Source: Takakia lepidozioides | Taxonomy: Eukaryota > Plantae > Bryophyta | Assembly: GCA_030704615.1 (NCBI GenBank) | Contig: CM060734.1 | Location: 59,334,001 to 59,398,000 of the forward strand | Reading direction: 5' to 3' | Length of the DNA stretch: 64,000 nucleotides | Part shown: positions 3,537 to 61,968 of the stretch, piece by piece | Numbering within the stretch: the first letter of the stretch is position 1 | Layout: every line of letters begins with the position of its first letter | Position numbers and translations under genes: made by a program | Notes under the pieces: generated by a model | What the model was told of the DNA's origin: nothing | The model's database searches: none | The model's input: the letters and a program-made list of their open reading frames with translations, nothing else

Positions 3537-4835
3537 CTATGTTGCAACCTCTTGAGCAGTACTCCCTGCCTGCTCAGTCAATGACAAGGCCTCATCCTGC
3601 CCCATCATCTCATCCTTGAGGACCTCCTCAACCCGAGAAGAATCCCCAACCTCATCCATCACAGCCGCCTTGGCTGCCAACTCCCTCTGAACCTCGAGCA
3701 CCTCCCACGTGTGCCATGGATGCATGCACCCCGTGGTCCTCACATGCTCGCCCCCACTCACTGCCTGTACCGTCTCGGTAGGCAGAGAGACCATTGAGGG
3801 AAGTGTACTCCGCACTCTGCGTTGCTCAGCCAGAGCCAAGCTGATAATCCAGGTCAAGCAATTGAGATCCATTGCTTGCCCCAACACTTGACGACGTGAT
3901 GCCTCAGAAAGAGACGACACCGCCGTGGTACCAGTGGTAAAACCCATTGCCCGCTCACGCTCGTCAGCATTAGGCTCCACTAACTGCTGCAACTGAGCAT
4001 CCCACAGGAGGCCAGGTCCACTATCCCGGAAAGCATGCGATCCTGGGAAGCTGAGCAGTGTAGGTAATGCTGCTCGTGGTTGACCCACCTTGTTGACCAC
4101 TGCCAAAGGCGAACGGTCATCGTGTCTCACACGCTGAGACTGCCTCCCTGTGTCCAGAATGTTATCCACTGTGAGATGTGCTGGCCGCTGCACCCCATCA
4201 AATGCACGCTTGAGCAGTGCGGGTGGCATCAAGTTAGTCCACCATAGCCGTGGACGATGAGCCCGTGACCCCACTGTAGCTGCATCTAGCAACACTGCTG
4301 ACCCAAGCCACGACCGGACTTGATGCACACTGGCCATCACCCTGGCCCGAGAATCGCCCATCAGTGGCACATTCTCCAAGATGTATGCTGGAGATACAGC
4401 TTGATGAAGCTGCAAGTGGCGCAAAACCCGCACCATCTCCCAAAACAGACCCGACCTCGAGTCTCGCAATCCATTGCCATGCCCGGCTGATGAATGCCCT
4501 TGGCAGGGCCAACCTGCCACTACCAGATCAATGGAGCCAACCCGCTCCAAATCCTGCGCCCCCAGCAACGAAATGTCTGCTGGCAAGGCCTGCTGATATC
4601 CACGAATTGCAGACACCGACAACAACTCAGGGTACCGCTGCACCAACTGAGCAACATGGCGAAGTGAAACGCGTCGTGCAGTCTCATCCCTCTCCACATA
4701 CAGGTAACGCCGAACTCGTACACCTGCCTGTAACACAGCAGCCAATCCGGTGCTGATCCCGCCAAACAAGTCCAGAAGACAAATGCCTTCATCCGGATAC
4801 TGCCACACAATAGGTGTGGTGTCCAATGGAGACAA
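3537..4835 (-). CDS. DNMT3-like C5 cytosine DNA methyltransferase domain within pol
   Basis: Motif I LDLFGGISTG, motif II E (YVERD), IV AGWPCQ, VI ILENV, VIII DAATVGSRAHRPRLWWTNL, IX ERERAMGF, X RRQVLGQAM. Same frame as RT, separated only by one TAG at 3539-3537. Confidence 0.92.
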   Translation of the reverse strand: MSPLDTTPIVWQYPDEGICLLDLFGGISTGLAAVLQAGVRVRRYLYVERDETARRVSLRHVAQLVQRYPELLSVSAIRGYQQALPADISLLGAQDLERVGSIDLVVAGWPCQGHSSAGHGNGLRDSRSGLFWEMVRVLRHLQLHQAVSPAYILENVPLMGDSRARVMASVHQVRSWLGSAVLLDAATVGSRAHRPRLWWTNLMPPALLKRAFDGVQRPAHLTVDNILDTGRQSQRVRHDDRSPLAVVNKVGQPRAALPTLLSFPGSHAFRDSGPGLLWDAQLQQLVEPNADERERAMGFTTGTTAVSSLSEASRRQVLGQAMDLNCLTWIISLALAEQRRVRSTLPSMVSLPTETVQAVSGGEHVRTTGCMHPWHTWEVLEVQRELAAKAAVMDEVGDSSRVEEVLKDEMMGQDEALSLTEQAGSTAQEVAT

Positions 4836-15400: not shown

Positions 15401-18400
15401 GAGACCGGTTAAGTAGTAGGCATACTGCTTGTCTGCATTTCATATTATGCGCTGAAATTGAGTAACAATGAAGCAATAACATAGTGGTGCTTCAGTATAT
15501 GTCTTCATTCAATCACTCACTCATGTGCCGGTCCTATGCAACTCATGTAATACATGGTGATATTCTATTATTGCATAGGCATGGATTGTGTTGTCGTCGT
15601 TTCCCAAAAGTGCTATTGGATTCTCTTATTGCGCTGTGCAGTTGAAGGTAGTGTTGGCCATTCCAACGGGAATAGGCCCCCGTTGTCAGGTCCTCGGGAA
15701 TAGGTGTTGTTTCCAATACACCCTAGACCCTAGGCTCATGCCTACCAAGCGTGAGCCTAGGCTCACGCTTACTGCGCTAAACGTGAGTCTAGCTCCCAGG
15801 CTCATGGGGCTGGGCTCATGTCCTAGCTACCCTCCAGCCAGAAGAAGGTTGTCGCACATGGAATTCGTAAGAACCGACTCTACCAGCTGTAACAGTGTAG
15901 CCCAAGTGTGACGGTGGAAAATGCGCAGCTTGCAAATACGAGAGGATTGGACACCAATCAAAGTATCGACTTGTGGCATCAACGATTGGGCCACATGGGT
16001 GTTGAGAATGTCAAACTCTTATCGCAGCAGAAGCTTGTAGATGGGCTAGCTGTAAGTAGTAAGGCAAAGCTGGAAGTTGTGTGCTTGGTAAGCAACATAG
16101 AGAGCGTTTTCCAAAGGAGGGAGCATCCAGAGCGACTGAACTATTGGATATAGTTCACTCTGATGTTTGGGGACCAACCAAGTCGTTGTCTTTTGACGGT
16201 CTTAGGTATTTTGTGACATTCACCGATGATCTTTCTCGAAAGGTATTTTGCTATTTCATGAAGAGCAAAGGAGAGCGCTTCACAAAATTCAAGGAGTTCA
16301 AGGCCTTTGCTGAAAGCCAAACAAGGAAAAGTTGAAGATTCTGAGAAGCGACAACAATGGAGAATACACCTCCAAAGAGTTCAAGAGTTTTCTCAAAGAT
16401 CATGGTATCCAACATCAAACTTCTGTTCCCTACACCCCTCAGCAGATGATTCAAGGGACGCACAACTGACGTTGTGGTGCATATGCTCCTCCACTTGACC
16501 CAACATTCTCCGTACAACATGTGGCATACTGGAAAGTCCATAACTTGATAAGTAGTTTCGCCATGTTATGATGGTTCTCCACTTTCATTCACTTTCATGG
16601 CTGAAAGAGTCAATCAAACGACCGTGGAGTCGGCGAGATGTATGTTGCACAGCCAACAGAAGTTAAGCCCTAAGTATTGGGCAGAGGCTGTAAGCACGAC
16701 AATCTACCTCAAAGCAAGAAGTCCTCACAAGTTAGTGGGAGGAATGACGCCAGAGGAAGCGTGGAGCGGAAAGAAACCCTTAGTAAATCATCTCAAAGTT
16801 TTTGGTTGTGAGGCCTATGCACACAGGCCACCTCAAACAAGAACCAAGCTTGAACCTAAGAGTACTAAATGTATATTTGTGGGGTACAACTTGGATTCTA
16901 AGGGATAAATGTTGATTGAGGAGACAACTGGAAAACTCATTATCAGTCGAGATGTGGTTTTCAACGAAGGATCCAATTTTAGCAATCATGTCACTTCAGT
17001 GGGAGTTGACGATCAGACAGAAGTGATTGTGGAACCAGGAGTTGTTACGAGAGAGCATGACAACGAGGATCAGGATGATCTTCAACTCAGGTCAGATTCA
17101 GATTCTCATACTCCTTCGGATTCCACTGCCCCACAGGTTTCTGACATCATCGTGCCACAGACCGAGTCTGCTCCATCGTTAGTACCTAGTTTGTTGTAGG
17201 ATGTGATTGAGATCCAAGAGCAACAACAACCTGTGGTGAGAAGATCAACCAGACTTCGGAGTGCACCTTCGAAGCTCACTCATTTTGCTTGCGCTACAAC
17301 TGTGGAAGAGCCACGAACCCTAACAGAAGCCCTTAAAAAGGATGATGCAGTGCAGTGGGAGCGAGCAGCAAATGAGGAGACTTATTCTTCTCTCATGAAG
17401 AATGGGACATGGGAGCTTGTGGAGCTTCCTCAAGGGAGAAAAGCCATTGGTAACAAGTGGATATTTAAGCTCAAGAGGAACACCAATGGAGAGGCTGCAG
17501 GGAGATACAAAGCCAGGCTAGTAGCGAAGGGTTATTCTCAGAAGGGAGGGATAGATTACGAAGAAACTTTTGCTCCAGTGGCACAATTTCCTTTTATCCG
17601 AACAATGTTGAGTATTGCAGCTTTGCATGATTTAGAGATTCACCAAATGGATGTGACATGTGCATTTCTTAATGGGGAGCTGAAGGAGGATGTGTACATG
17701 TTGCAGCCGGAAGGATATGAAGATCCTAAGCACAAGGGGCTGGTTTGCAAGCTTCGCAAGCTTCGCAAATCCATCTATGGGCTTAAGCAAGCACCAAGGG
17801 TTTGGAATGAGAAGATAAACACTTTTCTCAAGAAAAATGGGTTCAAAAGGTGTCAATCAGATTCAAGCATTTATGTGCGATCGCAACAGGAAGATCAAAG
17901 TGGCGTTGCTCTGGCACTGTATGTAGATGATGTACTCATCCTCAGCAAGAATGTCAAGGCTATCAACAAGGTCAAGGAGTCTCTCTCTGCAGAGTTCGAA
18001 ATGAAAGACCTAGGAGAGCTTGATATTTTTTTGGGGATTTAGGTGATCAGGAACAGGGAGAAGCGGATCATCAGTCTTGATCAATCTCAATACATCACAA
18101 AAGTGTTGAAGCGCTTTGGTATGGAAGAGTGTAAACCACTCAACACACCTCTGGATGTTAATGGGAAGCTTTGCAAAAGTCAAGGGCCTAGTACAGAGGA
18201 AGATATGGCTCGAATGGAAGGAATCCCTTACCGAGAGGCAGTATGTAGTCTCATGTATGCCATGTATGCAACAAGGCCAGATATCTCTGCCGCGGTTGGA
18301 ACAGTGAGTCAATTCATACAAAATCCGGGAGAACTTCATTGGAAGGGTGTCAAAAGGATCATGAGGTATCTCCAAGGGACTAAGGATTACTCGCTGCAAT

Positions 18401-33230: not shown

Positions 33231-35135
33231 ATGGCAGGGTTGAATCAGGCACAGTTCTTTGAAACCACCACCATGATTGAAGGAGGACCAAGAGGAGGAA
33301 TCAGCAAGAACTCTGCTGAAAGTTGGGGGTATGTGAGGACGCTGTGTAAGGCGGGACACCTGAAAGAGGCGCTGCACATTTTGAACCAAAGAGACATTCC
33401 CGCAGATTCAAGTACTTATGTCTGCCTCTTGCAGCAGGTCACCAAGTTGAAAGGCATACGAGAGGGAAAGCAAGTGCACACCCACATTATCCGTAGTGGA
33501 TTCAAGCCAAACATCTTTCTATTCAACACCCTTGTCAACATGTATGCCAAGTGCGGAAGCATGGTGGATGCTCGCCGAGTGTTTGACAAAATGAAAGAAC
33601 GAGATGTATTTACGTGGAATATAATGATAGCAGGCCATGCCAAGCATGGGGGGGGTTGGGAGGCTTTGGAGATTTATGAGCAAATGCAACAGGAAGGGAT
33701 GATGCCTGACAAGGTCACGTTCATTTGCGTTCTCAATGCGTGTGCCAGTCTGGCTGCCCTGGAAAGAGGCAAGCAGATACATGCTGACATCATGAAAGCT
33801 GGAAGTGCACCACATATCATTGTGGATACTGCCCTCATTGCTATGTATGCCAAATGTGGGGGCTTAAAGGATGCACGGAGAGTGTTTGACACTATGGCGC
33901 AGCGGAATGTGGTCTCCTGGAATGCAATGATTGCAGGATATGCTCAGAATCGGCGTGATAGGGATGCTCTTAGAATCTATTACCAAATGATGCAGGAAGG
34001 CGCAACAGCCGACAAGGTCACATACATTTGTGTTCTCAACGTGTGTGCCAGTCTGGAAATCCTGGAAAAGGGCATAGAGGTCCATGCTGCCATTGGCAAA
34101 GCCGGAATTGCACCAGACATTATTCTGGAGACTGCCCTTGTCGACATGTATGCCAAATGTGGGAGTATGAAGTATGCATGTCAAGTGTTTGACAATATGG
34201 CTAAACGTAATGTGGTGTCATGGACTGCAATGATCACAGGATATGCCAAATGCGGAAGCATCAGGGATGCCCGTCGAGTATTCAACATGATGGCTGAAAG
34301 AAATGTGGTATCTTGGAATGCAATGATTGCAGGATATGCACAGCACGGTTATGGTAGGGAGGCCTTACAATTATTTGGGCAAATGCAACAGGAGGGCCTG
34401 AAGCCGAATGTGATCTCATGGAGCACAATGATCTCAGGATATGCTCAGCATGGATGTGGTAAGGAGGCTTTGGAGATGTATGAGCAAATGATACAGGAAG
34501 GGGTGACACCAAACAATGTCACGTTCATTTCCATTCTCAATGCGTGTGCCAGCCTGGCGGCCCTGGAAAAGGGCAAAGAAATCCATGCTGACATTGTGAA
34601 AGCTAGAATTGTGCAAGATATTCATCTGGAGAATACCCTTGTCAACATGTATGCCAAATGTGGGAGTGTAAAGGATGCCCATCAAGTGTTCAACAATATG
34701 CTGGAGCGAGATGTGGTCTCATGGAGCGCCATGATCGCAGGATATGGGCAGCATGGATTTGGCAGGGACGCCCTCCAACTATTTGAACAAATGCAACAGG
34801 AAGGGGTGCAGCCGAACCTTATTACCTTTACATGTGTCCTTTCTGCATGTAGCCGTGTGGGCCTATTGGATGAAGGCCATCACTACTTTGATTCCATGAG
34901 TCGAGATCATGGCCTCACTTCTAGCGCAGAGCATTTTAGCTGTATGGTGGACCTTCTTGGTCGTGCCGGGCAATTGAATGAGGCAGAGGATCTTATCAAC
35001 AAAATGCCAACTAAACCAGGTGCTACAGTCTGGGGGGCATTGCTTAGTGCCTGCAGAAATCATGGCAATGTGGAAGTAGCAGAACGTGCAGCTAAATGTC
35101 TTCTCAACTGGAAGCCACAGCACACTGCAACTTAA
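33231..35135 (+). CDS. PLS-class pentatricopeptide repeat protein, truncated in the E domain
   Basis: Repeated LVNMYAKCG...A..VFD.M..RNVVSWNAMIAGYAQ P-L-S triplets and E1 VWGALLSAC. TAA falls where T-Y-VVLSNIY is expected; no DYW domain. Confidence 0.92.
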   Translation: MAGLNQAQFFETTTMIEGGPRGGISKNSAESWGYVRTLCKAGHLKEALHILNQRDIPADSSTYVCLLQQVTKLKGIREGKQVHTHIIRSGFKPNIFLFNTLVNMYAKCGSMVDARRVFDKMKERDVFTWNIMIAGHAKHGGGWEALEIYEQMQQEGMMPDKVTFICVLNACASLAALERGKQIHADIMKAGSAPHIIVDTALIAMYAKCGGLKDARRVFDTMAQRNVVSWNAMIAGYAQNRRDRDALRIYYQMMQEGATADKVTYICVLNVCASLEILEKGIEVHAAIGKAGIAPDIILETALVDMYAKCGSMKYACQVFDNMAKRNVVSWTAMITGYAKCGSIRDARRVFNMMAERNVVSWNAMIAGYAQHGYGREALQLFGQMQQEGLKPNVISWSTMISGYAQHGCGKEALEMYEQMIQEGVTPNNVTFISILNACASLAALEKGKEIHADIVKARIVQDIHLENTLVNMYAKCGSVKDAHQVFNNMLERDVVSWSAMIAGYGQHGFGRDALQLFEQMQQEGVQPNLITFTCVLSACSRVGLLDEGHHYFDSMSRDHGLTSSAEHFSCMVDLLGRAGQLNEAEDLINKMPTKPGATVWGALLSACRNHGNVEVAERAAKCLLNWKPQHTAT

Positions 35136-47328: not shown

Positions 47329-50300
47329 ATGGCGGAAAATGTCTTTACTTTATGCAAAGAGACTATAGATTTAGCCCAGTACCTCGTGGCAACTGAGAAA
47401 GATTTGCAGATCAACAAGCAGCAGTGTAAGCTTCTGGCAAAGAAGCTCTCAGGAACCCACGAAACATTAGACACGATCCGAGAAATCTTATTTGAAGAAG
47501 CGTGCCGCGGGCAATTTCGTGGTGCAAAACACTGGGAGCTGGTCATCAAGGAGCTCTATCGTGTACTGAAGGCTGCCGAGGCACTGATCAAGGATTGTTG
47601 CTGTAATAATCGGTGGCTGAAGGTAGCGATCAGGCAAGGCGACAAGAAGCAAGATTTTGCGGAATTGCTCTATGACGTAGATTGGTGCACTTCTGTTCTG
47701 TGTAGCAGTTTTCTCCAGCCAACCAGTCAAGAGACAGGCTACTTTGACGCAGGAGCATGCGAGGGTAACCTCGGTATCACAGAGTATTATGCTCTGGAGG
47801 CAGCAGCAAAGGATGACCAAGACAGCCTCAAGGCCTCTCTAAAGCACTTGAAGGGCGATCATGTTTGCATGGAGGGCTGCAAGCACCTCAACCAAACTGA
47901 GCAGTGCCTTGCAGCGCAGCTGTTGGGGAGATTGCAAGCCCCAGTCTTGCCAATTAATAGCAGCGAAATTGGTACCTCGCCGCTCATTTTGTGGGCGAAT
48001 CCTGGAGAGCTCACTGATGGAATTAAGTTAGGAGAAGGTTCGACGGTGAAGGTGTATGAAACTATGTGGGGAGGAGAAAAGTACGCAAAGAAAAAAAGCT
48101 CGGATAGCTCTTTGTTCAAGCAAGAGGTGGCTACTCTGGCAGGGCTTGATCATCCCCACATTATGCGGCTAGTTTGCTGCTCTCAAAGCAAGCGAGACAT
48201 CCTCCTGATGGAATTGATGGCCACGGACCTCCATGCCCTCTTGCACGCCAGACCCCGCCCGTTTCCGAATCTTGAAGCCGTTGACCTCATGCTGCAAATC
48301 GCTGAGGGGATAAAATATTTGCACGCCAGAAGCATCGCCCACCGTAATATAAAATCTTTGAACATTCTTGTCAGATGTGCAAATCTTCCAGCTTGTCTAG
48401 GAGAAGACGCCCGCGTGTTCGCGAAGATAGGTGGATTTGGCTTGTCGAGAGTCACACATTCGAAAACTAGATACTCAGCGCAAACACACTATATAGGTAC
48501 CAGACAGTGGATGGCACCGGAGGTTTTCAGTATGGAGGATAACGAAGATCTTCCTACCAGGTTGCAACCTCTGAAAGCAGATGTTTACAGTTTTGCGATT
48601 GTCTGTGCCGAGATATTGACAGGAGAGGAGCCATTTGGGGGGAATACATATGGGCTTGGGAGGAGGGTGAGGAGGGGGGAGAGGCCAAAGTTGTCGGAGA
48701 GTTGCCCAAACAGGTTGGCTTACTTGATTAAAAAATGTTGGGATGGTGACCACCTCCGGAGACCAGATTTCTCAGAGATTTGCAGAGAGCTAAGATATAT
48801 CAAAGGCCTCCTTCTGAAAGGTTAGTGACGCCCATGTTGTGAACATTGCTTTCAGCACCAGATATGATACTACGCAAGCTTTCTTGATGGACAGTTCCGT
48901 CACAATAGAGTCCCGAGATGATAACATCAGTGAAAATAGTAAGGGAATCTGTGAAACACAAAACAATCCTCTCGACCTCATCTTCTTCAACATACGATTT
49001 TACATTAGTTGTGACTCACAGAAATGCAATTCGAGGAAGAGATTATTGTGGAATTTGAAGGCTTTGATAATTGTTCATGAGAACCTTATCACTTCTAGGT
49101 CAAAATCTTTGCACGAGGTAACCTCTTCCTTCCGCCATGCTCTAGAAGTGATGGAATGATCAACCTTAAAGGAGTGACAATCGAGACCTTGATTGTCTAT
49201 CGTGAACATAGGGCTATTGATTAAATTGCTAAAGTGAGTCGCCCCTCTGATACAAATTCTGGATTCTACAGATGATGAAGTGCAGCTGGAGAAACTGGAT
49301 GCAGATGCTTTTCAAAACAAAGCAATTCAAGTAGGTGAAGACTATGTACATTCATTTCCTTTTTCGGACTCCCCACATAGAAGCATAGACAGCAGACGGG
49401 AGTTATATTCATGGAACTTTGTCTTGAGTATATTTGCATTGTGCACTTAAGATAAATGGCCAGATAAAATGGCCAGGTTAGAAGATATGTCTGGAATTTT
49501 TCTGATGCATTTCAATTGCATTTTCAGTTTTCCCACTTGCTGCACCTTCTCAACTTCATCATTGTTCCCGCTTTTGTTGTGCATATGTATCATCATATCA
49601 CTGAGTTCTGTATATGTGTTTATTAACCTCCCTCCTTGCGTATAGTGCCTCTGCACCCAAGGAAAATCTGGATATCTTCAATCTAGATCAAATTTGAAGA
49701 AAAGTTATGGATTGGTACAACTGTGTTGTATGCACTTTACCTCTGCGTTTTACAATTCGATAGAATCATTATCACAATGGAAATGTTTCGAGGATATCAA
49801 ACAGAAATTTCTATGCACCAAACCCCCCAAAAGAAAAACACACAAGCTTTGAAGTATAACATTGATATCTGGGTTCTGGCGTTGTGTGTTGTATATCATC
49901 AGGTACAAGGACCTTGGGGAGGTATAGGTGGAAGTCCTTTCTTTGATGGTATCACTACATCCATCAGAGGGTTTCAGCTCAAATTTGACAAGCCCCCACA
50001 GGCTCCCTGCATATGGTATCTTGAGGTGCAGTATGAGGTCAATGGAGTATCGTTCCAGTCATATCATGGTCTATCCAACTATGGGGCAAAATCTACTGAG
50101 GTTTGACTTTAACTCCTCCCTTCAATTTTCTAACAAGGTGTCTAACAAGCATGCTAAGCTACCATTCACCTTCCTCATTGACAAAAACCAACTGCCTTAT
50201 GTGACATTGTTCAGTTCCATCTCATTTTTCAACTCTCATCTGGTTTTGGAAGTTATTGCTTATTACTGTGTTTATTAATTCATTCTCTTTTCTTTATTAT

Positions 50301-50832
50301 ACAAGTAGGTGAGTTACATCAGAGTTTCCACATGTTTTCAGTGTGTCTGTTTGCAAATTTTAGCAACATTTTGTTATAGCCTATGCAGGTAAGGCATGAA
50401 CAAAACCTGTAATTGTATGTGTAAAGGGTGTTATTTGTCTACATGTTCATATAGTGATTCAATCATCAGATAGATTCTTTGTCTGCACCATTTAATTGTG
50501 GAAAGAGCACTTGTCAAGCCTGATATCTTCGTGCTTGAGTCTAGCTGACAGACTGCGTTTCATTGATTTCTGTCCAGATTTCATTCTCCTCCGAGGAATT
50601 CCTCGAGCAAATTGAAGGTTCATTTGGCTTTCAACCTGTTTATGTGGGATCCGACAAAGTTACAGGCATCACTTCTCTGACATTTCGCACCAATCTAAAC
50701 ACCTATGGACCATTTGGTGGTGAAGGGGATACCCAATTCAAGACAAATCCAGGAAGGGTAGTGGGTTTGTTTGGGAGATGTGGCCTGAGTCTTGATCAAC
50801 TTGGAGCATTTATCGTCCAAGATGAGACTTGA
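47329..50832 (+). CDS. MLKL/HeLo-like N-terminus + TKL-type pseudokinase + jacalin lectin; exons 47329-48820, 49272-49330, 49903-50100, 50578-50832 (~667 aa)
   Basis: All introns are GT-AG and phase-consistent. N-terminus NKQQCKLL...ELYRVLKAAEALIKDC...WL; kinase has HRN and GFG in place of HRD and DFG; jacalin GPWGG, ITSLTFRTN, YGPFG, GLFGRCGLSLDQLG. Confidence 0.88.
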
Positions 50833-52818
50833 GCAAAATATTGATACAAAATGTTCTTTTGGAGGTCCTTTTTTTTTTTTCCAGAACAGGGGACGAGGTC
50901 TTCAAATCCTGAGAGAGAATCTGGTGCCTGCACCCCAGGACCTCCAGCTTTTTCAACCGATGGTGCTAGGATTCCCCTGATGATCTTTGTTTCCATGGAA
51001 GTTAGGCCTCATAGCTCAAGAGCTAAATCTGGTGCGAAACAACAGACACTAACAGCGCTTGTAGCTGACTCACTGTGAGTCACAAAAGTAAGAATCAAGG
51101 AAACATCACTAGTCAAGACGAGCGGATATTGAAGAGCTGTAGTGGCAAGTCCGTCGGTAGAGAAGAGGAGATAGTGCTCACACACACACTTATCTCTCTC
51201 CTTTCCCATGCCCTTCCTGCCCAGACATCAGTAAGATACCGACAAATCAGTGTGATAATTAATTATAGTTAATAGGTTCACTGCTACCTAATATAGTAGA
51301 GCTAGTTTGCAGGCAGTTTAAGAGTAGGCTCTTCCCAAGATGGTGCCACATCATAGGACCTCTCCCATGCTGCCAAACCATGCAATGCCCAGTTTTGCCA
51401 GAGTCATTTCTTCTCATGTTACTGCCCATCACGCACAATTTCTTCTCTCGTATGGCAGTGGTGGAGCTGTACGCTGCTGTTGAAAGTCTGCTTGAAAGCA
51501 AAGGGATCCCAGTTGAGGTCTTCGGCCACGAAGTCTTCAGCCATAGTGTGCACCACTCTAGCCCTCCTTGAAGACTATAAACACATGAATGCAAACAAAT
51601 ATGATCTGTGTAAATCCTGTTATTAGAGCCTCTTCAGATGTACTTTTTTGTTCTCTCTGCAGACTTGTGATGGTCCTGCACTTGTTTATCCGGTACTCCT
51701 CGGACACTCTCAAGTGTGTGGAAGTACACTGTGAATGATGTCCTTGCACCAATGAAGATCAACAATCAAGACAAATGAAAACCTCCTTATTGTTTGCGTG
51801 TGCAACCAGTGCTCACTACAGTAAACTACAAGTAACTCATCTTTCAGTGTCCAATAGAACGAGCTGTAGGCTATAGCTCACATGTTGCCATGCAAAACTC
51901 CAACTGCTCCGGTTCTCCATTCCAACGTCTTAGAACAATTGCCGTCATTGTAGTTGAGGTACCATACTGGAAATGCAATCCTGATAACGATTCCTCTTTC
52001 CTTACAAAGTAGGCCACCATTTCTATGACATCCTCAACGTAGCAGCTCCCCAGTCAAGAATCTCTATTACAACCCCAAGTGTAAGATGAAACCATCGGGC
52101 AGAGAGACAGGCACTGAGAAATGATAAGACAACCCCAATGTGTGCCGGTCACCCATCTTCTGATGCATAAGGGATTACACAAGTTTGAAAGATGGTTCAC
52201 CCAGTTGTTTCAACATTGTGTCTTCCTTTAATGGCAGTGCTTTTGAGCCAGACTACATTGTAATCAGAAGAGTAGTTCCTAAATTTTACTTGCACTACTA
52301 ACCACCTACTTGGAGATCCAAGAATTTGGTTTCCATGTAGAGAAAACTGGCTTTACGTACATTAGTCAATAGTTATTCAGTACATCAGAATACTGGCACA
52401 GTAACACTAGTCTTACAAGCCAGACTGACATGCCCACTAAACCTCCTCTTACCACCAAATGCTCCTCGACACTAAGAACCAAATTGTGTCCATACTCTCA
52501 AGACTTCCACTTCACCATAGAGTCGACAGACACATCCCCGCAGCCTGCGCAGGCTGGGTTAGTGAGGCCTGCAAACAAGTTCGATTGTCTGATCGAGCAG
52601 TAGGTGAGACAACCAAATCGAGCTATGTGCCCTTAGGTGGTAGAGAACTCAACTGGAAGAACTCCCAAGGACGATGGCGCGCCTACAATCAAAACCCATC
52701 CAGACGTGAAAAACTTTGCATCAAGCGGATGCCTTACTTCATAATATCAACATGACAACTACTCTAGTGAGGAAAACTGCCACTAGAGCCAGTGCCAAAA
52801 GAAGTGGAGTAGAGTAAC

Positions 52819-53539
52819 TCACAGGTTTAAATCCTTCCGGGGAGCTTTTACTTTCAAGTAATTTTTTTTTATGGTGATACTTTCATGATCTGCTATCTCA
52901 TCACCATCAAAATTTGTAATAGGATCTGAATGCAAATATAAAAAATACTGGATGTATGTGTCATGTCTGCTTCTGCGGACAGAAAAGTGTCCACCATCTT
53001 CTATGGGTTTTGTTGTCAAGATTGTATGCACGCCAGCTAAGAACTGTTTCAAAACGATAGGATGACCAGTCTTGTTGATAATGTCTGTTGAGACCACATT
53101 CCCCTGGAATACTCGACGGAGCCTGTAATCAAAGTCCATCCATGTAAACATGTTAGCATAAAGAGGATCACTTGTTTCCATAAAATATCAGCACCACAAC
53201 CAATCACACCAGCAAAACACCTACGCTAGTGCCAACAACAGTGGTGAATAGAGCAACTTACAAACTTGTATCCTCTGGACGTCGAACATGTATTTTCGAG
53301 TAGGTTTTTTTGATGATGATACTTTCATTTTTGGATATGTCATCACCATCAACTTCCACAGCAAGATCTGACTTGACATATAGACTGTACTTGCGGTCCC
53401 TGTCATATGCATTGTGGCGGATGACATAGGTCATGTCATCTTCCAGTGTGGTCAAAGTTATGTACACGCCATCTGAGGATTCTTTCAAATCGATAGGAAG
53501 GCCAGTCCTGTTGAGAATGTTTGTGGTGATCCAGTCCAT
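52819..53539 (-). CDS. Unknown small protein with two tandem ~90-aa beta-rich domains; probable intron 53261-53123; may continue past a GTGAGT donor at 52822
   Basis: TNILNRTGLPIDLK...DGDDISKNESIIIKK versus TDIINKTGHPIVLK...DGDEIADHESITIKK. GTAAGT donor, CTAAC branch site and CAG acceptor join the two in frame. Confidence 0.6.
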
Positions 53540-53821
53540 ACCTAAATATTCCTGCTCTTCAGCACAACGAAAGTTCTTGGGACATCCTGAGAAATTGGAA
53601 CTCAACAATTAATATTATGGGCCAAACAAATGTTTGACAAGATGCATCTTGTCAAAATGTGAAAAGCAATGATTTTCAATATAGAAAAGCACTTGGGCAG
53701 ATAAATGGTGTGCATATTGTCAAAATGTGAAAACCAAGGCTTGTCAGTATAAAAAGCACCTACACATAGAAGAGTGAGCTGGATTTTTCCGAGGTACCTA
53801 TCAAGCCAAGGGGTGTTGCGC

Positions 53822-55174
53822 TCATCCGCTATGGCACAATAATCTCCTGCAATCTAGAAGCACGATTGTAGAGAACACAAGAAGGGCCACTATCGAAAGT
53901 CCGATTGCAAAGCAGCCCTTGAAACCAAGGCGTGCGTTCACCACTTCAGGTTCATCCTTTGCATGCACAGCGAAATCAAACTGATTTCCGTAACTCTTCA
54001 GCGCATCAATCCGTTTCTTCAAAACCTGAAAGACCGACCATACTCCTTTCCTTTGTCATTAGAAGTCGTAGGCACATGTAGACTTGATAAGACCTATTTT
54101 CAGATTGGAGATTTATCATGAGGTGCCTGCCCCCAGAATTCACCACTTCAACTATGAGAAGTTAGTGAAGTTTCGCATGACATACAGTGGTAGCATTGGG
54201 AAAGGGATAACTTGCCAATGTGAGCTGCACATTTCATGTAGTCCTGAATAAAAATGTCACCACACAACTAGCCAATGCAAACAAATGACCTCTTTTCTAG
54301 AAAATCTGTTATCTCAAATAATAATAAAAGCCAAGGCGTTGGACACTACATGAGCTCTACAATCAGATTTCATGCTCAAGAGTTAGAGGTTGGTCAAAAA
54401 ACCGGTTTCGATTATATTTCTCCGAGACAACCTAGGACCATTTACATAGCTTTAACGGATGTTAACCAGGAAATCAACGATTTTGAACACAAGGGAGAGA
54501 GAGTGCACCTTAGAAGCTTTTCGCTCACTCTTAATGCCGTTCCTCCATCTGATGTGATCCAAGATCTTTAGGACGACGCCACCGATGGTCACAATGGACG
54601 CTAAGAGAGAAAGTGAGAAGGGACCCCACCAGTTAGTGCATAGAAGATTGTTTGCTTGGGCGAGAGCTGTGAGCACAACACCTTGAAACACAGTATAGAA
54701 CCCGATCAACTGATATATTTCGGTCTTCACATTGTTACTAAGAGCCTCTTTGCTCTCTATCCTGGAGCGACACTCCTGAAACCTAGTTTCCCATTCGTTC
54801 AATATCAATTTGAGCTCAGGGTTGGCATCAATTTCCCTCAGAACTTTAGCTTGTATTGCACTGGCTGGAAGATCCTTCTTTCTAGTTCTAAGAGCTTGAC
54901 ACACCGTGTCAGCTTCGACAAAGTCTGATTCCTCTATTTCGATGCAAATGTCAACCTTAGAGTTGTTAGACACTACACTTACAGGATAGCCTTTCAAAGA
55001 CTCAAAATCCAAAACTCTTGGGAGCTCCACATGAACGTCTAGCCTCTCCTTGTTCACAGAATTCTGCTCTACCCTCTTAAGAATGCCTTCAAAACCCTGG
55101 AAACGCACAATTGGTAACCGGACAGACGAAGCAGATTCCCTATTGATGTTAGCGCCTTCAACCGTGCTGGACAT
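53822..55174 (-). CDS. Unknown membrane protein (coiled coil + 2 TM + coiled coil + 1 TM); exons 55174-54509 and 54025-53822 (~289 aa)
   Basis: EIYQLIGFYTVFQGVVLTAL, WWGPFSLSLLASIVTIGGVVL, FAIGLSIVALLVFSTIVLL; phase-0 GT-AG intron. Confidence 0.75.
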
Positions 55175-56018
55175 GCTCAATACCTGAGCGCAATCACCGG
55201 CCACTGCCCCACAATCCTCCCTCTTGGCGTGCAAATCTGTAAGCTCCCTGCCCAGCTTTCTCTAGCTCTCTACTCTTGTGGGTCACTCAAAAGGCAGCAG
55301 CACCCGTGTGACACACAAGATACTGTCGGTAATGAGCCCGATGATGTCACCTGAAGCATTATGCTTTTTACTTGCTGTTTTTACTTTGTTAGCTCTGGCT
55401 CTGGTAAAATAGTACGGTCGACCGTACCGGGTCGCTGCATTTATTTTTTTATTTTTTTCGTTCTTCAAAAATCGCCAGAGGCCGCTGGCGTTGAGGGGTT
55501 GAAATCGTCTCACACGGGAAGTTCCGACAGGAGGACGTACCTAACTTAACACCGCTCCCAGGACCCGACACACCCGTGACCCATGCCTATTCTGGGACCA
55601 CGAAAGGACTCGTTGGTATTCTACGCTCACACACGGCAGCTGACTCGGCCCTTCCACTGTATTCGCCCTCCTTCACGGAAGGGCCTCGCACCTGCCCCGT
55701 CCCCAAGTCCCCGCCCCATGGAACGGGAGTACGTGGCATGGAACCCCTGGTCAACCGCGCTTCTCGAACCACGTGGCCCTTGAGATTCGTGGAACAATAT
55801 TGTCCCTGGGATGAGATGTTATCTAGGGTTGATGTGCACCCAGATAATCAGAGGGTGGAAGCACATGAGCAGATTTCTATGCACTGGAAAGGCGCTGCCC
55901 TCCAACTTGCCGGGTGTGCCCTCCGGCCCACCCTTGACCCTTTGAGACCGCTATCTATTTTGGCGGGCCACCCCAAAAATTGTGCATACCTAAACACCTA
56001 CCTAGTACCGATGATCCG

Positions 56019-56042
56019 GGTCGCCTCGTCATTTAGGGTTAA
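56019..56042. mobile_element. Orphan terminus related to the piggyBac-like element
   Basis: ggtcgcctcgtcatttaggg-TTAA versus ggtcgcctcgtccattagggg-TTAA at 23290-23314. The other end was not found. Confidence 0.5.
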
Positions 56043-56387
56043 ACCGCGGAAAGTCCTCGAGCGGGAAATTCTGGTACATACAGAAGCCACCTTCTAAGCT
56101 TTCAGGGACTTCCATGGTCGCGTTTCATCCATTACTTTCCGGTGAAGACCTGAAGTAATTTCTTCCTCGTACGTCTATTGCAGTGGGAAGGATCGAGAGC
56201 ATTGATGCTGCCCCACACATTTGCACATGACTATTAGACTTAGAAGCAGAATCATGGAAATGTTGTGAAACGCACGGCCCTCGATCTTATATTATACTCT
56301 ACCAACGGAGCCCGGCTCTGCCACAGCGAAGCAGGCGACCAGATCGATGCGCTGCTACAGAGCCCTCGTGCCAGTCGGTGGCTTCGA

Positions 56388-56805
56388 GTGGATTCTCCGG
56401 TGCTGCCATTCTTATGAAATTCATGAATGAGACGTTTGCTTGCTGGCATCTCTTGATCGCGTTGCTGCACAGAAATTCTGATAGGGTTCGCAAGAGGTGA
56501 AGCCCTGGTGACGGTCGATGGTTGAGTTTCAGTTTGTCGGGGAACTGTCAAACTAGAGGCAGATCTGAGAGTTTCGAAAGCAGGCCCGTGATATAGGGAG
56601 GCAGTGGATTCTCCGGTGATTCCATTCTGATGAAATTCGTGAATGAGACGTTTGCTTGTTGGCATCCCTTGATCACGTTGCTGCACAGAAATTCTGATAG
56701 GGTGCGCAAGAGGTGAAGCCCTGGTGACTTGCTTTCGACGGTTGGGTTTCAGTTTGTCGGGGAACAGTCAAACTGGAGGGTTTCGAGATCAGGCCCGTGA
56801 TGTAG
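56388..56805. repeat. ~215-bp tandem duplication upstream of kinase copy 2, homologous to the upstream region of copy 1 (~46975-47150)
   Basis: gtggattctccggtg...cacagaaattctgataggg..cgcaagaggtgaagccctggtgac occurs twice. Confidence 0.85.
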
Positions 56806-56970
56806 TGGGAAGAACCCGTCTCTTTGAGTTGTGGCATTCGCAGCTATCAGCACCGTGAATTGGCGGTTCCCAACTCTTCTTCTCAGATTGTAATTATCTC
56901 GTAGCCATTTGTTCTATCGCAGCATGCCTTCTAGGTAGTTATCGGCTCAACGCACTTGAGAACAGAATCC

Positions 56971-59900
56971 ATGGCGGAAAATGTTCTGACTTTATGCAAA
57001 GAGACTATAGATTCAGCCCAGTACCTTACGTCAACCGAGAAAGATTTGCAGATCAACAAGCAACAGTGTAAGTTTCTGGCAAAGAGACTATCGGGAGTCC
57101 AAGCAACATTAGACAAGATCCGGGAACTCTTATCTGATGAAGAAGCAAGTGCAAATAGTTTTCACGATGCAAATGACTGGGAGCAGGCCATGAAAGAGCT
57201 TTGTCGCATACTAAAGGCTGCCGAGGCACTGATCAAGGATTGCTGCTGCAATGGTCGGTGGCTGGATGCAGCGATTAGGTATGGTGACAAGAAGCAAGAT
57301 TTTGCGGAATTGCTACACGGTGTAGACTGGTGTACTTCAATTCTGTGCGGCATTTTTTTCAAGCGGACCTCTAAAGAGACGCGCTACTACATTGATGCAC
57401 GAGGGTGCGAAGGGCAACTCAGCATCACTGATTTCTTCACTCTGGAGGCAGCGGCAAAGGACGACCAAGACAGCCTCAATGCCTCCTTGAAGCGCCTGAG
57501 GGCCGATCATGTTTGCGTGGGGAGCTGCAAGCAACTCAACCAAACTGAGCAATGTCTTGCAATGCAGTTGTTGGGGAGATTGCAATTAGCCCAAGCCTTG
57601 CCACTCAACCGAAGGGACGTGGATACATCTCCGCTCATTTTGTGGGCGAACGCCGAAGAGCTTGATAATGGAATTAAGTTAGGAGAAGGTTCGATGGGGA
57701 AGGTGTATGAAACTGTGTGGCGAGGAGAAAAGTACGCGAAGAAGAAATTCATAGGCACAAAGAGCTCAATGTTCAAGGAAGAGGTGGCTGCTCTAGCAGG
57801 ACTCGATCATCCCCACATTATGCGGCTAGTTTGCTGCTCTCAAGGCAAGCGCGACACCCTCCTGATGGAATTGATGGACAAGGACCTCCATGCCCTCTTG
57901 CATGAAAAATCTACGCCATTTTCGAACCTTCGAGCAGTTGACCTCATGCTGCAAATTGCCGAGGGGATGAAATATTTGCACGCTAGAAGCATTGCTCACC
58001 GTGATCTCAAGTCTCTGAACATTCTGGTCAGATCCATAGATCTTCCAGCTTGTCTAGGAGAAGACAGGCACCTGTACGCAAAGGTAGGTGATTTCGGATT
58101 GTCAAAGATCAAGAATGAGAGTACCAGGTACTCAAATCAAACACTGGATGTAGGTACCAGACAATGGAAGGCGCCGGAGGTTTTCAGTGTGGAGGATGAC
58201 TTAGAAAATCATCCTACCAGGTTTTACCCTCTGAAAACAGATGTTTATAGTTTTGGGATTGTATGTGCTGAGATACTGACAGGAGAGGAGCCATTTGCGA
58301 ACGACTTATATGGAATTCGGAGGAGGGTGAAGGGGGGTGAGAGGCCAAAGCTGCCGGAGAGTTGTCCAGCCAGGTTAGCTTTCTTGATTAAAAACTGTTG
58401 GGATGGCGACCCTCTCCGGAGACCTGATTTCTTACAGATTTGCAGAAAGCTGAGATACATCAAAGAACTCCTTCTGAGAGGTTAGTGACTGCCATCTTCA
58501 GTTCCTGTGAGCATTGCTTTCAGAACTAGATAAGTACTAGCACTATACAAGCTTGCTTAACAAATAGTTCAGTTTAACCTAGAGTCCCATGATATTAACA
58601 TCAGTGAAAATGTCGAGGGCATCTTATATGTATGAGATTGTCCTCTCAACAGTGCTCTTCTTCATACAATCTTAAAGAGGGATGGACAGAGATGTAATGA
58701 AGAGGAGGTTAATGGCCACAAAATCCTGAGGTTTTGGTTCCTCTTCTTGTGTTGCAGTCAGTTATGGTTGAACATTGTCCCCACAGAGAGAAGACGTTGG
58801 CCATGGCCAGTGTAACTAAGTGCCACTTAGCCTTTCAGTTACTGCCCACTTCCGGGGGTTGGCCTTGTCCGTAGAAAATAGTCCAGTCATGAGCTTGCAC
58901 AAAGTTTTCACTATTATCTAGATTTGAAATGAGTACACTAAACCCAAATTAGTGCAACCGTTCTAAATATGTAAGTGTTCTAGGTCAACATCTTGCACCA
59001 GAGTCTTTTTCCTACACCATGCTGTAGGAATGAATGATCAAATGGCAACGGAGACCTTGATCTTCCGTATTTGGACAAACTGTTATTGATGAAACTGACT
59101 TCCTCATGTCCTTCTAATGTCTATGAATACTTGAATATGCAGATGATAAAGTGCAGCTGGAGAAATTGGACGACCATGCTTTTCAAAACAAAGCAGTTCA
59201 GGTTCATAATTACTACGAACATTCTTTGAGTATATTTGCATTGTGTAGTAGTTTGATGAAATCCTTACTTATTGTTTTTTGCGATTTCAGAGTTTAGAGA
59301 GTATGTCAGGACCATATTCTGTTGGGGCATGTCACTTGATTGCCCATTCATTCCACTTGCATTTTATTGTCATTCCTGCTTTTGACGAGGTGCATGCGCA
59401 GCTTCCTCATATCACCAAGTTCTGTATATTGTGGCATTATTTCTTGTCCAAGTCGCTTTGGTGTTTAGTGTCTCTGACTTAGTCATGTAAGAAACTTACA
59501 ATCTGGATTTTGTCAACATAGAGAAAGAAAATAATAGTAACTACACTTTAGAGAACGCTAACATCAGGGTTGTACATTGGTTTATTTTATATCATCAGGT
59601 ACAAGGTCCTTGGGGAGGTGCAGGTGGAAGTGCTTTCTATGATGGTATTGCTACATCCATCAGAGGGTTTGCGCTCAAATTTGACCACTACCCAAGCTCT
59701 CCTTGCATATGGTCTATCGTAGTCACGTACGATGTCAATGGAACAATATTCCAAGAAGGTCATGGTGACCAAAACTATGGCAGCGAATTTGCTGAGGTTT
59801 GATTCTTACCTCCTCACTTCAATTGGAAGGTCTTCCCTAAGCATTCACCTTTCTCATTGACCAAAACCCACTACTCAGCATATCATTTTTCTCCTTTCAT

Positions 59901-61403
59901 TTGATATTTGTAAGTCATTATTTTCTTTTTTCTTTCTATTTTTTAATAAAGGAAACCTGGGAACGAGAGCCCACAATTCAGGCCCTTTTTGAGGAGGGGG
60001 AAAAATTAAACCCCTTTCATCAATGGGCCTTGAGACATACAGGACGAACAACATCCAGACAGATCGCCACGAACAATCCACACAGGGCAAGGGAGGGCGT
60101 GTTTGAACCCTGAACAACCAGTGTGACACACTTTTTTCTTTTTAAAAAAAAATTAAGACAAAGGGGACAGAGGCCCTTTTAATCAAATTAATAAGTAAAG
60201 AAGAATACAGGAGGAAAAAATAACTTCCAGGTGGGCCGTGAAGGCATATCACATGGGGAACTACCCAGACCCTAAGAGATAAGGGGGAACAGGGGGACTG
60301 TGGGAAGAAGAGAGCCTGACCCGGCTGGCAAGGAACGAAGAGAACTCAGAGCCGGATGGGGCGCCAGGAACTAATGAAAACAGGCATCAGTAAAGCTATG
60401 CTGAGCCTTAATCTTAAAAAACCCGATGCCAGCCCTGGCAAGCAGAAAATCACATAGCCTGAAGACCAAGAATGGCTCAAGAGCTGATCTAAACATTGCC
60501 ATTAAAGCTGAGGTGAGCCTTAGCCTTTGGGATTCGGAGCTTGCGATGCTTCCAATTCACCTCCGGTTCCTCAGCATCAGCGGGGGACTTGCCAGCAGTG
60601 AGGGAGGCCATGATGCCAGATAATGGTTTTGGCCAAAGTGCGGGTGCAGAGAATGTTATTCTTGGCCCAGGAGAGGTCGAAATTCGAGCTAAGTTGCTGT
60701 CGAAGACTTTCTCCACACTACGCACTTACTTACCAGCTGAGCTCGATGTGCTTCTTTTCTCTTTTAGAAAAGGAAACTTGGGATGGACAACTTTACAAAA
60801 GAGGGGAAAAGTAACCCCTTTCACCTTAGCCATGAAGCACACACGAGTCATTATTTGTGTACTAATTGATTTTTCTCTTTGTTACAATATTCACAGTTTG
60901 CATATGTCTTGGAGATGTTAGGTGGAAAATATGCGAGGGTATGTACTGATACAAGGCACGAAAAATATCTCTAACCGTATCTACTACGAAGGATGTAGCA
61001 TCTTTTCACGTGCATAATTCTAATCCCCACACCCCCTTTCAAACCTGGGCCCCTTATTATGGGATCATCTTGCATAATAAAGTATTTGCTTGTATCATTT
61101 TATTGTTTGAGTCTAGATTACACACTGATTTTATTGATTTGTATCCAGATTATTTTCTCCCCCATTGAGTTCATTGAGCGAATCGAAGGTTCATTTGGCA
61201 TTCAACCTGTTACTGTTGGACCCGACAGCGTTACAGGTCTTACTTCTCTGACATTTTTCACCAACTTAGACACCTATGGACCATATGGCAATGAAGGGCA
61301 TTCGAATTTCAAAACAGATACTGGAAGGGTGGTGGGTTTGTTTGGGAGATGTGGCATGACTATCGATCAACTTGGAGCATTTATTGTCCAAGATGAAATT
61401 TGA
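56971..61403 (+). CDS. MLKL/HeLo-like N-terminus + intact TKL-type kinase + jacalin lectin; exons 56971-58480, 59143-59201, 59599-59796, 61149-61403 (~673 aa)
   Basis: Exons 2-4 are the same sizes as in the paralogue. GEGSMGKV, AKK, HRDLKSLN, DFG, APE, DVYSFG; jacalin GPWGGAGG...GLFGRCGMTIDQLG. Confidence 0.9.
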
Positions 61404-61968
61404 ACAACTTTTATGTTAAAAGATAATGTAATAAGTACAGTCAAGTCTTAACGTCTTAAGTCTTAACCCTCATTAGATGCTATCATCGGACTTTTGTTAT
61501 ATCGGCTTAAATGAAATGGTTTGAGACATAATATAATACCATAATACCTTAATATAATGTGTCATAATTTAGGACGACATAATATCATATCATATATATA
61601 TTATATATACCGTATATCATTTAGGCTTTGCTTTAAAATACTATATATACTTTAGTATATAATATTAAATGAAACGGTATTATGTCTCCAATTTTGATCG
61701 AAGGATTTGGTTATTCAAATTGTTTCATTATATCTTTCGAAGGGATATTGTGTAAACACCAGTTACATCATCACAGTCAGTCACTTTACACTAATGGTTC
61801 CTTTGCAGTCGTTTAGGGAATTTCGACGATAGTGAGATTCACACACAAAGTATAACAGTCCAACAACATGCTGAAATTGTCGTGTGCATCTCTGGTGATT
61901 ACTCAACCAAAGCCACAAGGGTACGGTATACTTAGCCTTATAAGGCCCGGGCCACACCTAGCCTATAA

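Follow-up and report, generated by a model that had tools for sequence, protein, structure and literature searches.

The window analysed here is a 64,000-nt stretch of plant nuclear DNA from Takakia lepidozioides (GCA_030704615.1; contig CM060734.1, positions 59,334,001-59,398,000 of the forward strand), and the subject of this report is a pair of genes at 47329-61403 of that window. Each gene encodes a helical bundle, a brace, a protein kinase, a 20-residue linker and a C-terminal jacalin lectin. Sequence comparisons leave very little doubt that the products are MLKL-family proteins that carry a jacalin domain. The wider proposal is that the genes are tandem paralogues of a non-seed-plant MLKL branch in which a lectin has replaced the serine-rich tail, and that this lectin gates the protein; we consider the chances of this combined reading to be about even.

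Domains of the two proteins and their nearest relatives

The window genes were searched exon by exon, and whole-protein analyses were carried out with an annotated full-length orthologue, P0001. The Pfam protein kinase profile matched exon 1 of both genes (1e-41 for gene 1 and 2e-47 for gene 2), as did DUF1221 (32.4 and 33.4 bits; cutoff 25). MLKL_N scored 16.5 bits in gene 1 and 19.3 bits in gene 2, and up to 21.2 bits among all family proteins scanned, always below the cutoff of 27. The jacalin profile matched exon 4 of each gene (Table 1), the first half of the domain being encoded by exon 3, and the whole jacalin domain of P0001 was detected at 4e-21. An NCBIfam scan returned generic bacterial kinase families only and was uninformative for a plant gene. 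A preliminary description of this DNA, made from the sequence without database searches, had stated that the proteins lack a signal peptide and a transmembrane segment. We obtained the same result, as no 19-residue stretch exceeded a Kyte-Doolittle value of 1.27 in either protein, and no signal peptide was found, both N-termini being polar. Both proteins should be cytosolic. Assignment to the lectin receptor-like kinases was rejected on these grounds and because the lectin lies C-terminal to the kinase.

Assignment of the N-terminal region to the HeLo/MLKL type, proposed in the same description, was borne out by several comparisons in addition to the DUF1221 score. A phmmer search of PDB with the first 211 residues of gene 2 identified AtMLKL2 (6lba_A; E=0.001) and nothing else meaningful, and a profile built from lycophyte and bryophyte members only found AtMLKL2 at 1.4e-5. 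A profile that included flowering-plant DUF1221 rows (A1) had given 4.5e-47 for AtMLKL2; this value was discounted as circular and the search was redone without those rows. The AlphaFold2 model of gene 2 residues 1-232 was all-helical (predicted local distance difference test, pLDDT, 83.5; pTM 0.81), with brace helices at residues 153-178, 185-188 and 194-210. The top Foldseek matches to this model were AtMLKL3, AtMLKL2 and then the human MLKL executioner domain (probability 1.0). MLKL entries occupied ranks 1-8 in a VIA-align comparison (Z 14.7-11.7, root-mean-square deviation 2.0-4.5 A over 129-187 residues), and the alignment to AtMLKL2 had Z 13.6 over 187 residues. The motifs N..QC..L and EL.R....AE.LI..C...W, which had been singled out as typical of this domain, are present and fall on near-invariant columns of the family alignment (N30, Q33, C34, L78, C92 and W98). 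Taken together, the fold match and the sequence homology make a convincing case for an MLKL/HeLo bundle. The best match to the full-length P0001 model was the whole AtMLKL3 chain (E=6e-18, TM 0.66 by target, 538 columns), and the bundle, brace and kinase are predicted to be arranged in a manner resembling the auto-inhibited AtMLKL3 protomer.

When the kinase domain was searched alone, its closest solved relatives were AtMLKL3 (6ka4_A; 9.9e-41) and AtMLKL2 (6lba_A; 2.6e-40), with the next-best solved kinase, EGFR, eight orders of magnitude behind at 2.4e-32. Because the bundle and the kinase are each nearest to AtMLKL2/3, these comparisons indicate that bundle, brace and kinase as a unit share their descent with the canonical plant MLKLs, and are not a look-alike produced by independent fusion as in grass MLKL-K (PMC11297308; 10.64898/2026.08.07.743466).

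The preliminary description had treated the two genes alike, which does not hold for their catalytic residues. Gene 2 retains every catalytic motif: GEGSMG (GxGxxG), AKK, the alpha-C Glu, HRD..N, DFG and APE. In gene 1 the G-loop reads GEGSTV, without the third glycine, and HRN and GFG replace HRD and DFG; its AKK/VAIK lysine, APE and other structural motifs are retained. The full catalytic set is found in both Diphasiastrum complanatum proteins described below and in nearly all Sphagnum members. Ceratodon is less uniform, three of four scanned members showing HRD and DFG. In the DUF1221 MLKLs of flowering plants the VAIK lysine is replaced by R, and the other two motifs read HGD and GFG. The window probably pairs an active kinase, encoded by gene 2, with a pseudokinase, encoded by gene 1.

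The closest PDB relative of the C-terminal domain was the Parkia lectin (1zgr; 2.5e-24), followed by artocarpin, KM+ and heltuba, which are mannose/glucose-specific. The GG and GxxxD loops had been described as intact, and we reached the same view: the glycine of the GG loop aligns with artocarpin Gly15 in both genes, and the GxxxD loop reads GLSLD in gene 1, GMTID in gene 2 and GMTFD in P0001. GxxxD is retained in the moss members as well. With the sugar-binding loops present, a lectin of the mannose type is predicted. In the mannose-specific jacalin-related lectins (artocarpin, Parkia lectin, heltuba), which gave the best C-terminal sequence matches and share the Gly and GxxxD loops, the domain stands alone or in tandem, whereas the window genes carry a single domain behind a kinase and a conserved 20-residue linker.

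Gene models, splicing and sequence evolution

Gene 1 and gene 2 are tandem paralogues on the + strand, about 8 kb apart, with four exons apiece (Table 1). The start and end positions proposed for the pair (47329 and 61403) agree with our exon models. Exons 2-4 measure 59, 198 and 255 nt in either gene, and every border is GT..AG.

Table 1. Coordinates of the two kinase-jacalin genes in the window
Feature	Position	Strand	Content	Evidence
Gene 1 coding sequence	47329-48820, 49272-49330, 49903-50100, 50578-50832	+	667 codons	
Gene 1 exon 1	47329-48820	+	Helical bundle (about residues 1-135), brace (about 136-227), degenerate kinase; ends in phase 1, donor G/GTTAGT (slash, exon end)	Open reading frame, Pfam, kinase motifs
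Gene 1 exon 2	49272-49330	+	Linker DDEVQLEKLDADAFQNKAIQ, 59 nt	AG/GT borders; size and frame match gene 2 and the Diphasiastrum exon
Gene 1 exon 3	49903-50100	+	N-terminal half of jacalin with GPWGGIGG loop	Pfam, sequence, translation
Gene 1 exon 4	50578-50832	+	C-terminal half of jacalin, GLSLD (GxxxD) loop, stop codon	Pfam jacalin 1.4e-16
Gene 2 coding sequence	56971-58480, 59143-59201, 59599-59796, 61149-61403	+	673 codons	
Gene 2 exon 1	56971-58480	+	Helical bundle, brace, kinase with all catalytic motifs	Covered by contigs of X1 and X2
Gene 2 intron 1	58481-59142	+	Starts GT TAG	Contigs of both runs enter from exon 1
Gene 2 exon 2	59143-59201	+	Linker, 59 nt	GT..AG joints 58480 to 59143 (X1) and 59201 to 59599 (X1, X2)
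Gene 2 exon 3	59599-59796	+	N-terminal half of jacalin (GPWGGAGG)	Contig joints, translation
Gene 2 exon 4	61149-61403	+	C-terminal half of jacalin with GMTID, stop codon	Joint 59796 to 61149 (X1, X2); Pfam jacalin 6e-14

Splicing of gene 2 was followed in contigs of two public runs, X1 and X2, placed on 56700-61600; the runs are transcriptome-like, their label "RNA?" being a guess. Joints of the GT..AG type were present at three of three introns, those of introns 2 and 3 in both runs. A 711-nt X1 contig starts with 28 nt of exon 1, spans exons 2-4 and reaches the 3' untranslated region with at most 2 mismatches, and contigs continue in that region to at least 61572. The joint across intron 1 is provided by this one X1 contig, with 28 letters on the exon-1 side, which is slightly below the 31-letter rule applied to such joints. 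It is consistent with the annotation of the Diphasiastrum gene O6H91_23G051300, as the protein of that gene maps onto its own locus in the same four exons, and with the protein junction conserved in mosses. The three-domain protein had been said to arise only once four exons are spliced; the contig joints of gene 2, which connect the kinase exon with the jacalin exons, and the Diphasiastrum exons substantiate this. An artefact in which a kinase gene was joined to a separate jacalin gene was ruled out by the spliced contig, the Diphasiastrum exon structure and the moss junction. The model for gene 1 rests on canonical splice sites, exon sizes equal to those of gene 2 and an intact frame.

In both genes intron 1 opens with GT-TAG (48821-48825 and 58481-58485), such that an unspliced message stops one codon past the kinase. 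For this reason the raw open reading frames end in …LLKG and …LLRG followed by the stop. Intron 3 of gene 2 is 1352 nt long compared to 477 nt in gene 1, and at about 59800-61100 several contigs of both runs veer into unrelated sequence (at 59987, 60191, 61019 and 61058). It seems likely that this intron carries a repeat or transposon insertion.

The ratio of non-synonymous to synonymous change (dN/dS) was estimated per branch in a three-way comparison of gene 1, gene 2 and the Diphasiastrum gene. Values for bundle, brace and kinase were 0.25-0.49 on all three branches. On the gene 1 branch they were 0.49, 0.27 and 0.49, respectively, and on the gene 2 branch 0.26-0.31, with 0.28 for the kinase. 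As its frame is intact and its branch dN/dS is well under 1, we conclude that gene 1 is under purifying selection and is not simply dying. The first lectin exon (exon 3, 64 codons) was near neutral, at 0.8-0.9 on all three branches, and the second (exon 4) gave 0.5-0.66. Gene 2 groups with the Diphasiastrum genes in the protein tree (SH-aLRT 95), whereas by synonymous distance gene 1 and gene 2 are slightly closer to each other (0.44) than to Diphasiastrum (0.51-0.54). The two results differ on the timing of the duplication.

Family members, proposed mechanism and alternatives

The closest public proteins are two Diphasiastrum complanatum "hypothetical proteins" with 67-74% identity. At the DNA level the exons match this species at about 78-81%, and by similarity the sequence reads as that of a lycophyte related to, but distinct from, D. 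complanatum. Numerous Sphagnum sequences came up in a first protein search, and in a dozen of these Pfam detected jacalin. When the N-terminal domain was used for an exhaustive profile search of 1.84 billion representatives, the matches amounted to only 256 clusters (50% identity). Four more jacalin-bearing representatives were found, three of them from the moss Ceratodon purpureus, and Pfam confirmed two of them. A word-indexed search with the jacalin or N-terminal part of P0001 gave little beyond the two Diphasiastrum proteins, a result that reflects the limit of the word index and not absence.

Sphagnum and Ceratodon proteins have a common junction, …(Y/F)IKxLLL[KR], then DD or GD, a short linker and (Q/E)GP(W/F)G, and the pattern LLL[KR]-DD..FQ..(Q/E)GP(W/F)GG of the window genes recurs in them. 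The architecture is also present in Diphasiastrum, Sphagnum and Ceratodon. Many seemingly lectin-less relatives are unspliced open reading frames that end in "G" plus junk, by read-through of the same phase-1 intron, and in a bundle-kinase tree the jacalin-bearing members appear at three places among apparently lectin-less rows. The fusion of kinase, linker and jacalin is probably old, and a single old fusion followed by losses would be the simplest reading. Some Sphagnum clades have serine-rich tails instead of jacalin, as in seed-plant MLKLs. Two further features of the family were observed. P0150, P0161 and P0209 (1071-1175 residues) contain two kinase domains with an MLKL-like bundle before or between them, and by sequence are tandem-kinase variants of the same family. 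The N-terminal bundle of P0101 (578 residues) scores 30.2 bits with Pfam RPW8 (cutoff 30.4), which hints at a sequence continuum between RPW8-like and MLKL-like bundles.

Working with 48 seed plants, Mahdi et al. (2020; bioRxiv 10.1101/681015) defined plant MLKLs as pseudokinases whose tail is rich in serine, and the DUF1221 MLKLs of flowering plants are likewise pseudokinases (bioRxiv 10.64898/2026.08.07.743466). The four-helix bundle (4HB) of AtMLKL kills cells, and AtMLKL tetramers repress themselves (bioRxiv 10.1101/681015); a 4HB-dependent Ca2+ influx is also attributed to AtMLKL in the summary given in PMC11297308. The AtMLKLs (AtMLKL1-3; PDB 6ka4, 6lba) share a HeLo-type bundle, a brace, a TKL-type kinase fold and a cytosolic nature with the window proteins. 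Their bundles and kinases are mutual nearest solved relatives by sequence, and the predicted arrangement is similar. The window genes differ in ending in jacalin where AtMLKLs have a serine-rich region. Like the other clade-1 MLKLs, and in part gene 1, AtMLKLs are pseudokinases, whereas the catalytic motifs are intact in gene 2 and the majority of its relatives. A further difference is distribution, the jacalin-bearing branch being found in lycophytes and mosses.

Animal MLKL, the executor of necroptosis (PDB 4btf, 6zvo, 6ux8, 2msv), has a similar executioner-domain fold (Z 14.7-11.7) and the same order of bundle, brace and kinase-like domain, but identity is about 13-15%, MLKL_N scores are below cutoff (16-21 versus 27 bits), and the animal protein is a lectin-free pseudokinase under the control of RIPK3, which licenses it. 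The MLKL-K proteins of Poaceae show that an MLKL-like protein with an active kinase can serve as an immune receptor or executor (PMC11297308; 10.64898/2026.08.07.743466). Members of this group (wheat Pm13; R3AK) resemble the window proteins in having a four-helix bundle, a brace, a catalytically competent kinase, a cytosolic location and expanded families. However, their bundles are of the MLKL_NTD/Cbl-N type and they arose as separate, recent grass fusions without a lectin, whereas the window bundle is of the DUF1221 type, the kinase is nearest to AtMLKLs and the family is common to mosses.

Chia et al. (PMC11218826) reported that NLRtracker flags MLKL-type proteins in all plants examined, non-seed plants included, without describing them. 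Kinase/jacalin fusions in mosses were counted by Van Holle and Van Damme (2019; PMC6362431, Supplementary Table 3); as we interpret the table columns, about 26 of 30 jacalin genes of Sphagnum fallax and 8 in Physcomitrella are of this type. These chimeric lectins, which combine a protein kinase with one jacalin domain, very probably belong to the same family as the window genes, but the survey considered two Pfam domains only, and the MLKL-like bundle, the kinase type and the lycophyte members are unmentioned there. In the literature searched we found no link of the moss kinase/jacalin fusions to MLKL and no publication joining MLKL, jacalin and plant; jacalin, kinase and HeLo occurred together only in one paper, on Podospora. 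Proteins of this architecture are already public as hypothetical proteins.

The preliminary description had interpreted each protein as an NLR-independent sensor, switch and executor of cell death in a single chain. The structural part of that interpretation, a HeLo/DUF1221 bundle with an MLKL-type kinase, is upheld by our results, and we regard the functional part as a reasonable hypothesis only. In such a mechanism the brace and kinase would hold the bundle down at rest, as in auto-inhibited AtMLKL3. Binding of a mannose-type glycan, or of a glycosylated or pathogen protein, to the lectin would cluster the protein, and jacalin domains commonly self-associate. Next, the active kinase encoded by gene 2 would phosphorylate its substrates in trans, and the pseudokinase made by gene 1 may be among them. 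Once released, the bundle would act on membranes and bring about the cation influx or death known from reports on AtMLKLs, and a message retaining intron 1 would give a lectin-less form. As a mechanism, this lectin-gated executor is possible, with a probability somewhat short of even. A crude motif scan of all six frames of the 64-kb window, which is a weak test of NLR independence, found no NB-ARC P-loop of the kind expected from a paired NLR.

Several observations weigh against this mechanism or the assignments on which it builds. The Foldseek E-values for AtMLKL3 and AtMLKL2 were just 0.02-0.04, and HIP1R, the first unrelated bundle in the VIA-align comparison, reached Z 11.7. Helical bundles readily score high and a fold match alone would be weak; because unrelated bundles score high as well, the fold evidence leans on the sequence homology. 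The strands of the jacalin part of the full-length P0001 model were predicted with pLDDT 30-59, and this poor lectin model leaves the contacts of the lectin with the bundle and kinase unplaced. The fast evolution of the first lectin exon may fit a diversifying recognition domain, but fits relaxed constraint equally well in so small a sample. Contigs running from exon 1 into intron 1 of gene 2 are present in both X1 and X2, which together with the immediate stop points to a jacalin-less product as well. The lectin may thus be missing from part of the gene 2 product. The annotated isoforms of 561 and 714 residues of the Sphagnum gene CY35_10G074000 echo these contigs, and inclusion of the lectin may be regulated through intron-1 retention. 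The apparently intact kinase departs from the pseudokinase-switch model and may signal by phosphorylation beyond acting as a switch. Wheat Pm13, a kinase-active MLKL-like protein, depends on its brace and kinase, but not on its 4HB, to cause death (PMC11297308).

The last two points lead to the main rival of the executor mechanism, a kinase output as in Pm13. The proteins would be chiefly kinase-driven signallers of the Pm13/MLKL-K kind. Their bundle and brace would control the kinase or make it oligomerise, or would offer a surface for perception or a decoy; the jacalin domain would recruit substrates or bait pathogen effectors, and the output would be phosphorylation and not damage to membranes by the bundle. 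Catalytic motifs are kept in gene 2, the Diphasiastrum orthologues and most moss members whereas flowering-plant DUF1221 MLKLs are pseudokinases, brace and kinase of Pm13 suffice for death where the 4HB does not (PMC11297308), and jacalin is known from the literature as an integrated domain in grass NLRs; these points favour such a signaller. However, purifying selection acts no less strongly on the bundle than on the kinase (dN/dS 0.26-0.49), the bundle is homologous to the death-causing HeLo domain of AtMLKL (10.1101/681015), and gene 1 has been maintained despite its lost catalytic residues, which fits a non-catalytic scaffold role. On balance we consider a chiefly kinase-driven output rather unlikely. 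A non-immune function, in which a cytosolic lectin-kinase acts in stress, developmental or cytoskeleton-linked signalling and the likeness to MLKL reflects ancestry only, appears improbable. Nucleocytoplasmic jacalin lectins have many roles in stress, and the crude P-loop scan revealed no NB-ARC gene in the window. Two AtMLKLs associate with microtubules, and AtMLKL immunity is separable from cell death (10.1101/681015). Tandem duplication, the large expansion in Sphagnum, fast evolution of the lectin exon and the split into kinase and pseudokinase are nevertheless the usual marks of immune receptor families.

It is very improbable that gene 1 is a decaying duplicate and that only gene 2 is functional. 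The loss of the HRD Asp, the DFG Asp and the third G-loop Gly could be taken in this sense, as could the gene 1 branch, which is the longest (0.21 versus 0.12), and the higher dN/dS of its kinase (0.49 versus 0.28). Gene 1 nonetheless keeps an intact 667-codon frame in four exons with canonical splice sites, the branch dN/dS of 0.27-0.49 is well under 1, its GFG is the same change as in functional flowering-plant MLKL pseudokinases, and the VAIK lysine and APE are kept.

If the lectin-gated executor mechanism holds, it could be extended further. The jacalin-bearing proteins would then represent an ancestral, self-contained plant MLKL, a kinase-active membrane executor gated by its lectin that predates the TNL/EDS1-dependent pseudokinases of seed plants; gene 2 and gene 1 would form a writer-executor pair like RIPK3 and MLKL, and intron-1 retention would tune the system through lectin-less forms. 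Such an extension is a long shot. The EDS1-SAG101 pathway that activates AtMLKLs is not known to occur outside seed plants. The branch bears on how the bundle-kinase module was controlled before TNL/EDS1 signalling existed. The combination of an intact kinase with an own ligand-binding domain suggests an older form of regulation by direct ligand sensing and autophosphorylation, which gives a concrete, testable idea. Natural contrasts are available in the gene 1 and gene 2 kinases side by side, in jacalin and serine-rich tails among Sphagnum proteins and in annotated isoforms with and without the lectin, and orthologues exist in transformable mosses (Physcomitrium, Ceratodon). The assignment supplies a likely function for most jacalin genes of peat mosses and is relevant to the evolution of plant cell-death and immune machinery.

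Other features of the window

Between the two genes, two similar, adjoining open reading frames of 120 and 116 residues lie on the - strand at 52819-53181 and 53258-53608, each matching Pfam DUF7748 at about 43 bits (cutoff 25). A 260-residue open reading frame with a hydrophobic C-terminal part at 54452-55234 (-) had no Pfam match and may be a gene or a transposon remnant in the intergenic stretch. Elsewhere in the window, an open reading frame for retrotransposon reverse transcriptase and RNase H (2250-3377, -) adjoins one that resembles C-5 cytosine DNA methylase (3540-4835, -; 5e-13); this part (2250-4835) is GC-rich (0.52-0.59) and has a strong negative GC skew. A copia-type reverse transcriptase fragment is located at 17203-18039 (+; RVT_2, 4e-72), and an intact pentatricopeptide-repeat gene consisting of a single open reading frame of 634 residues is found at 33231-35135 (+).

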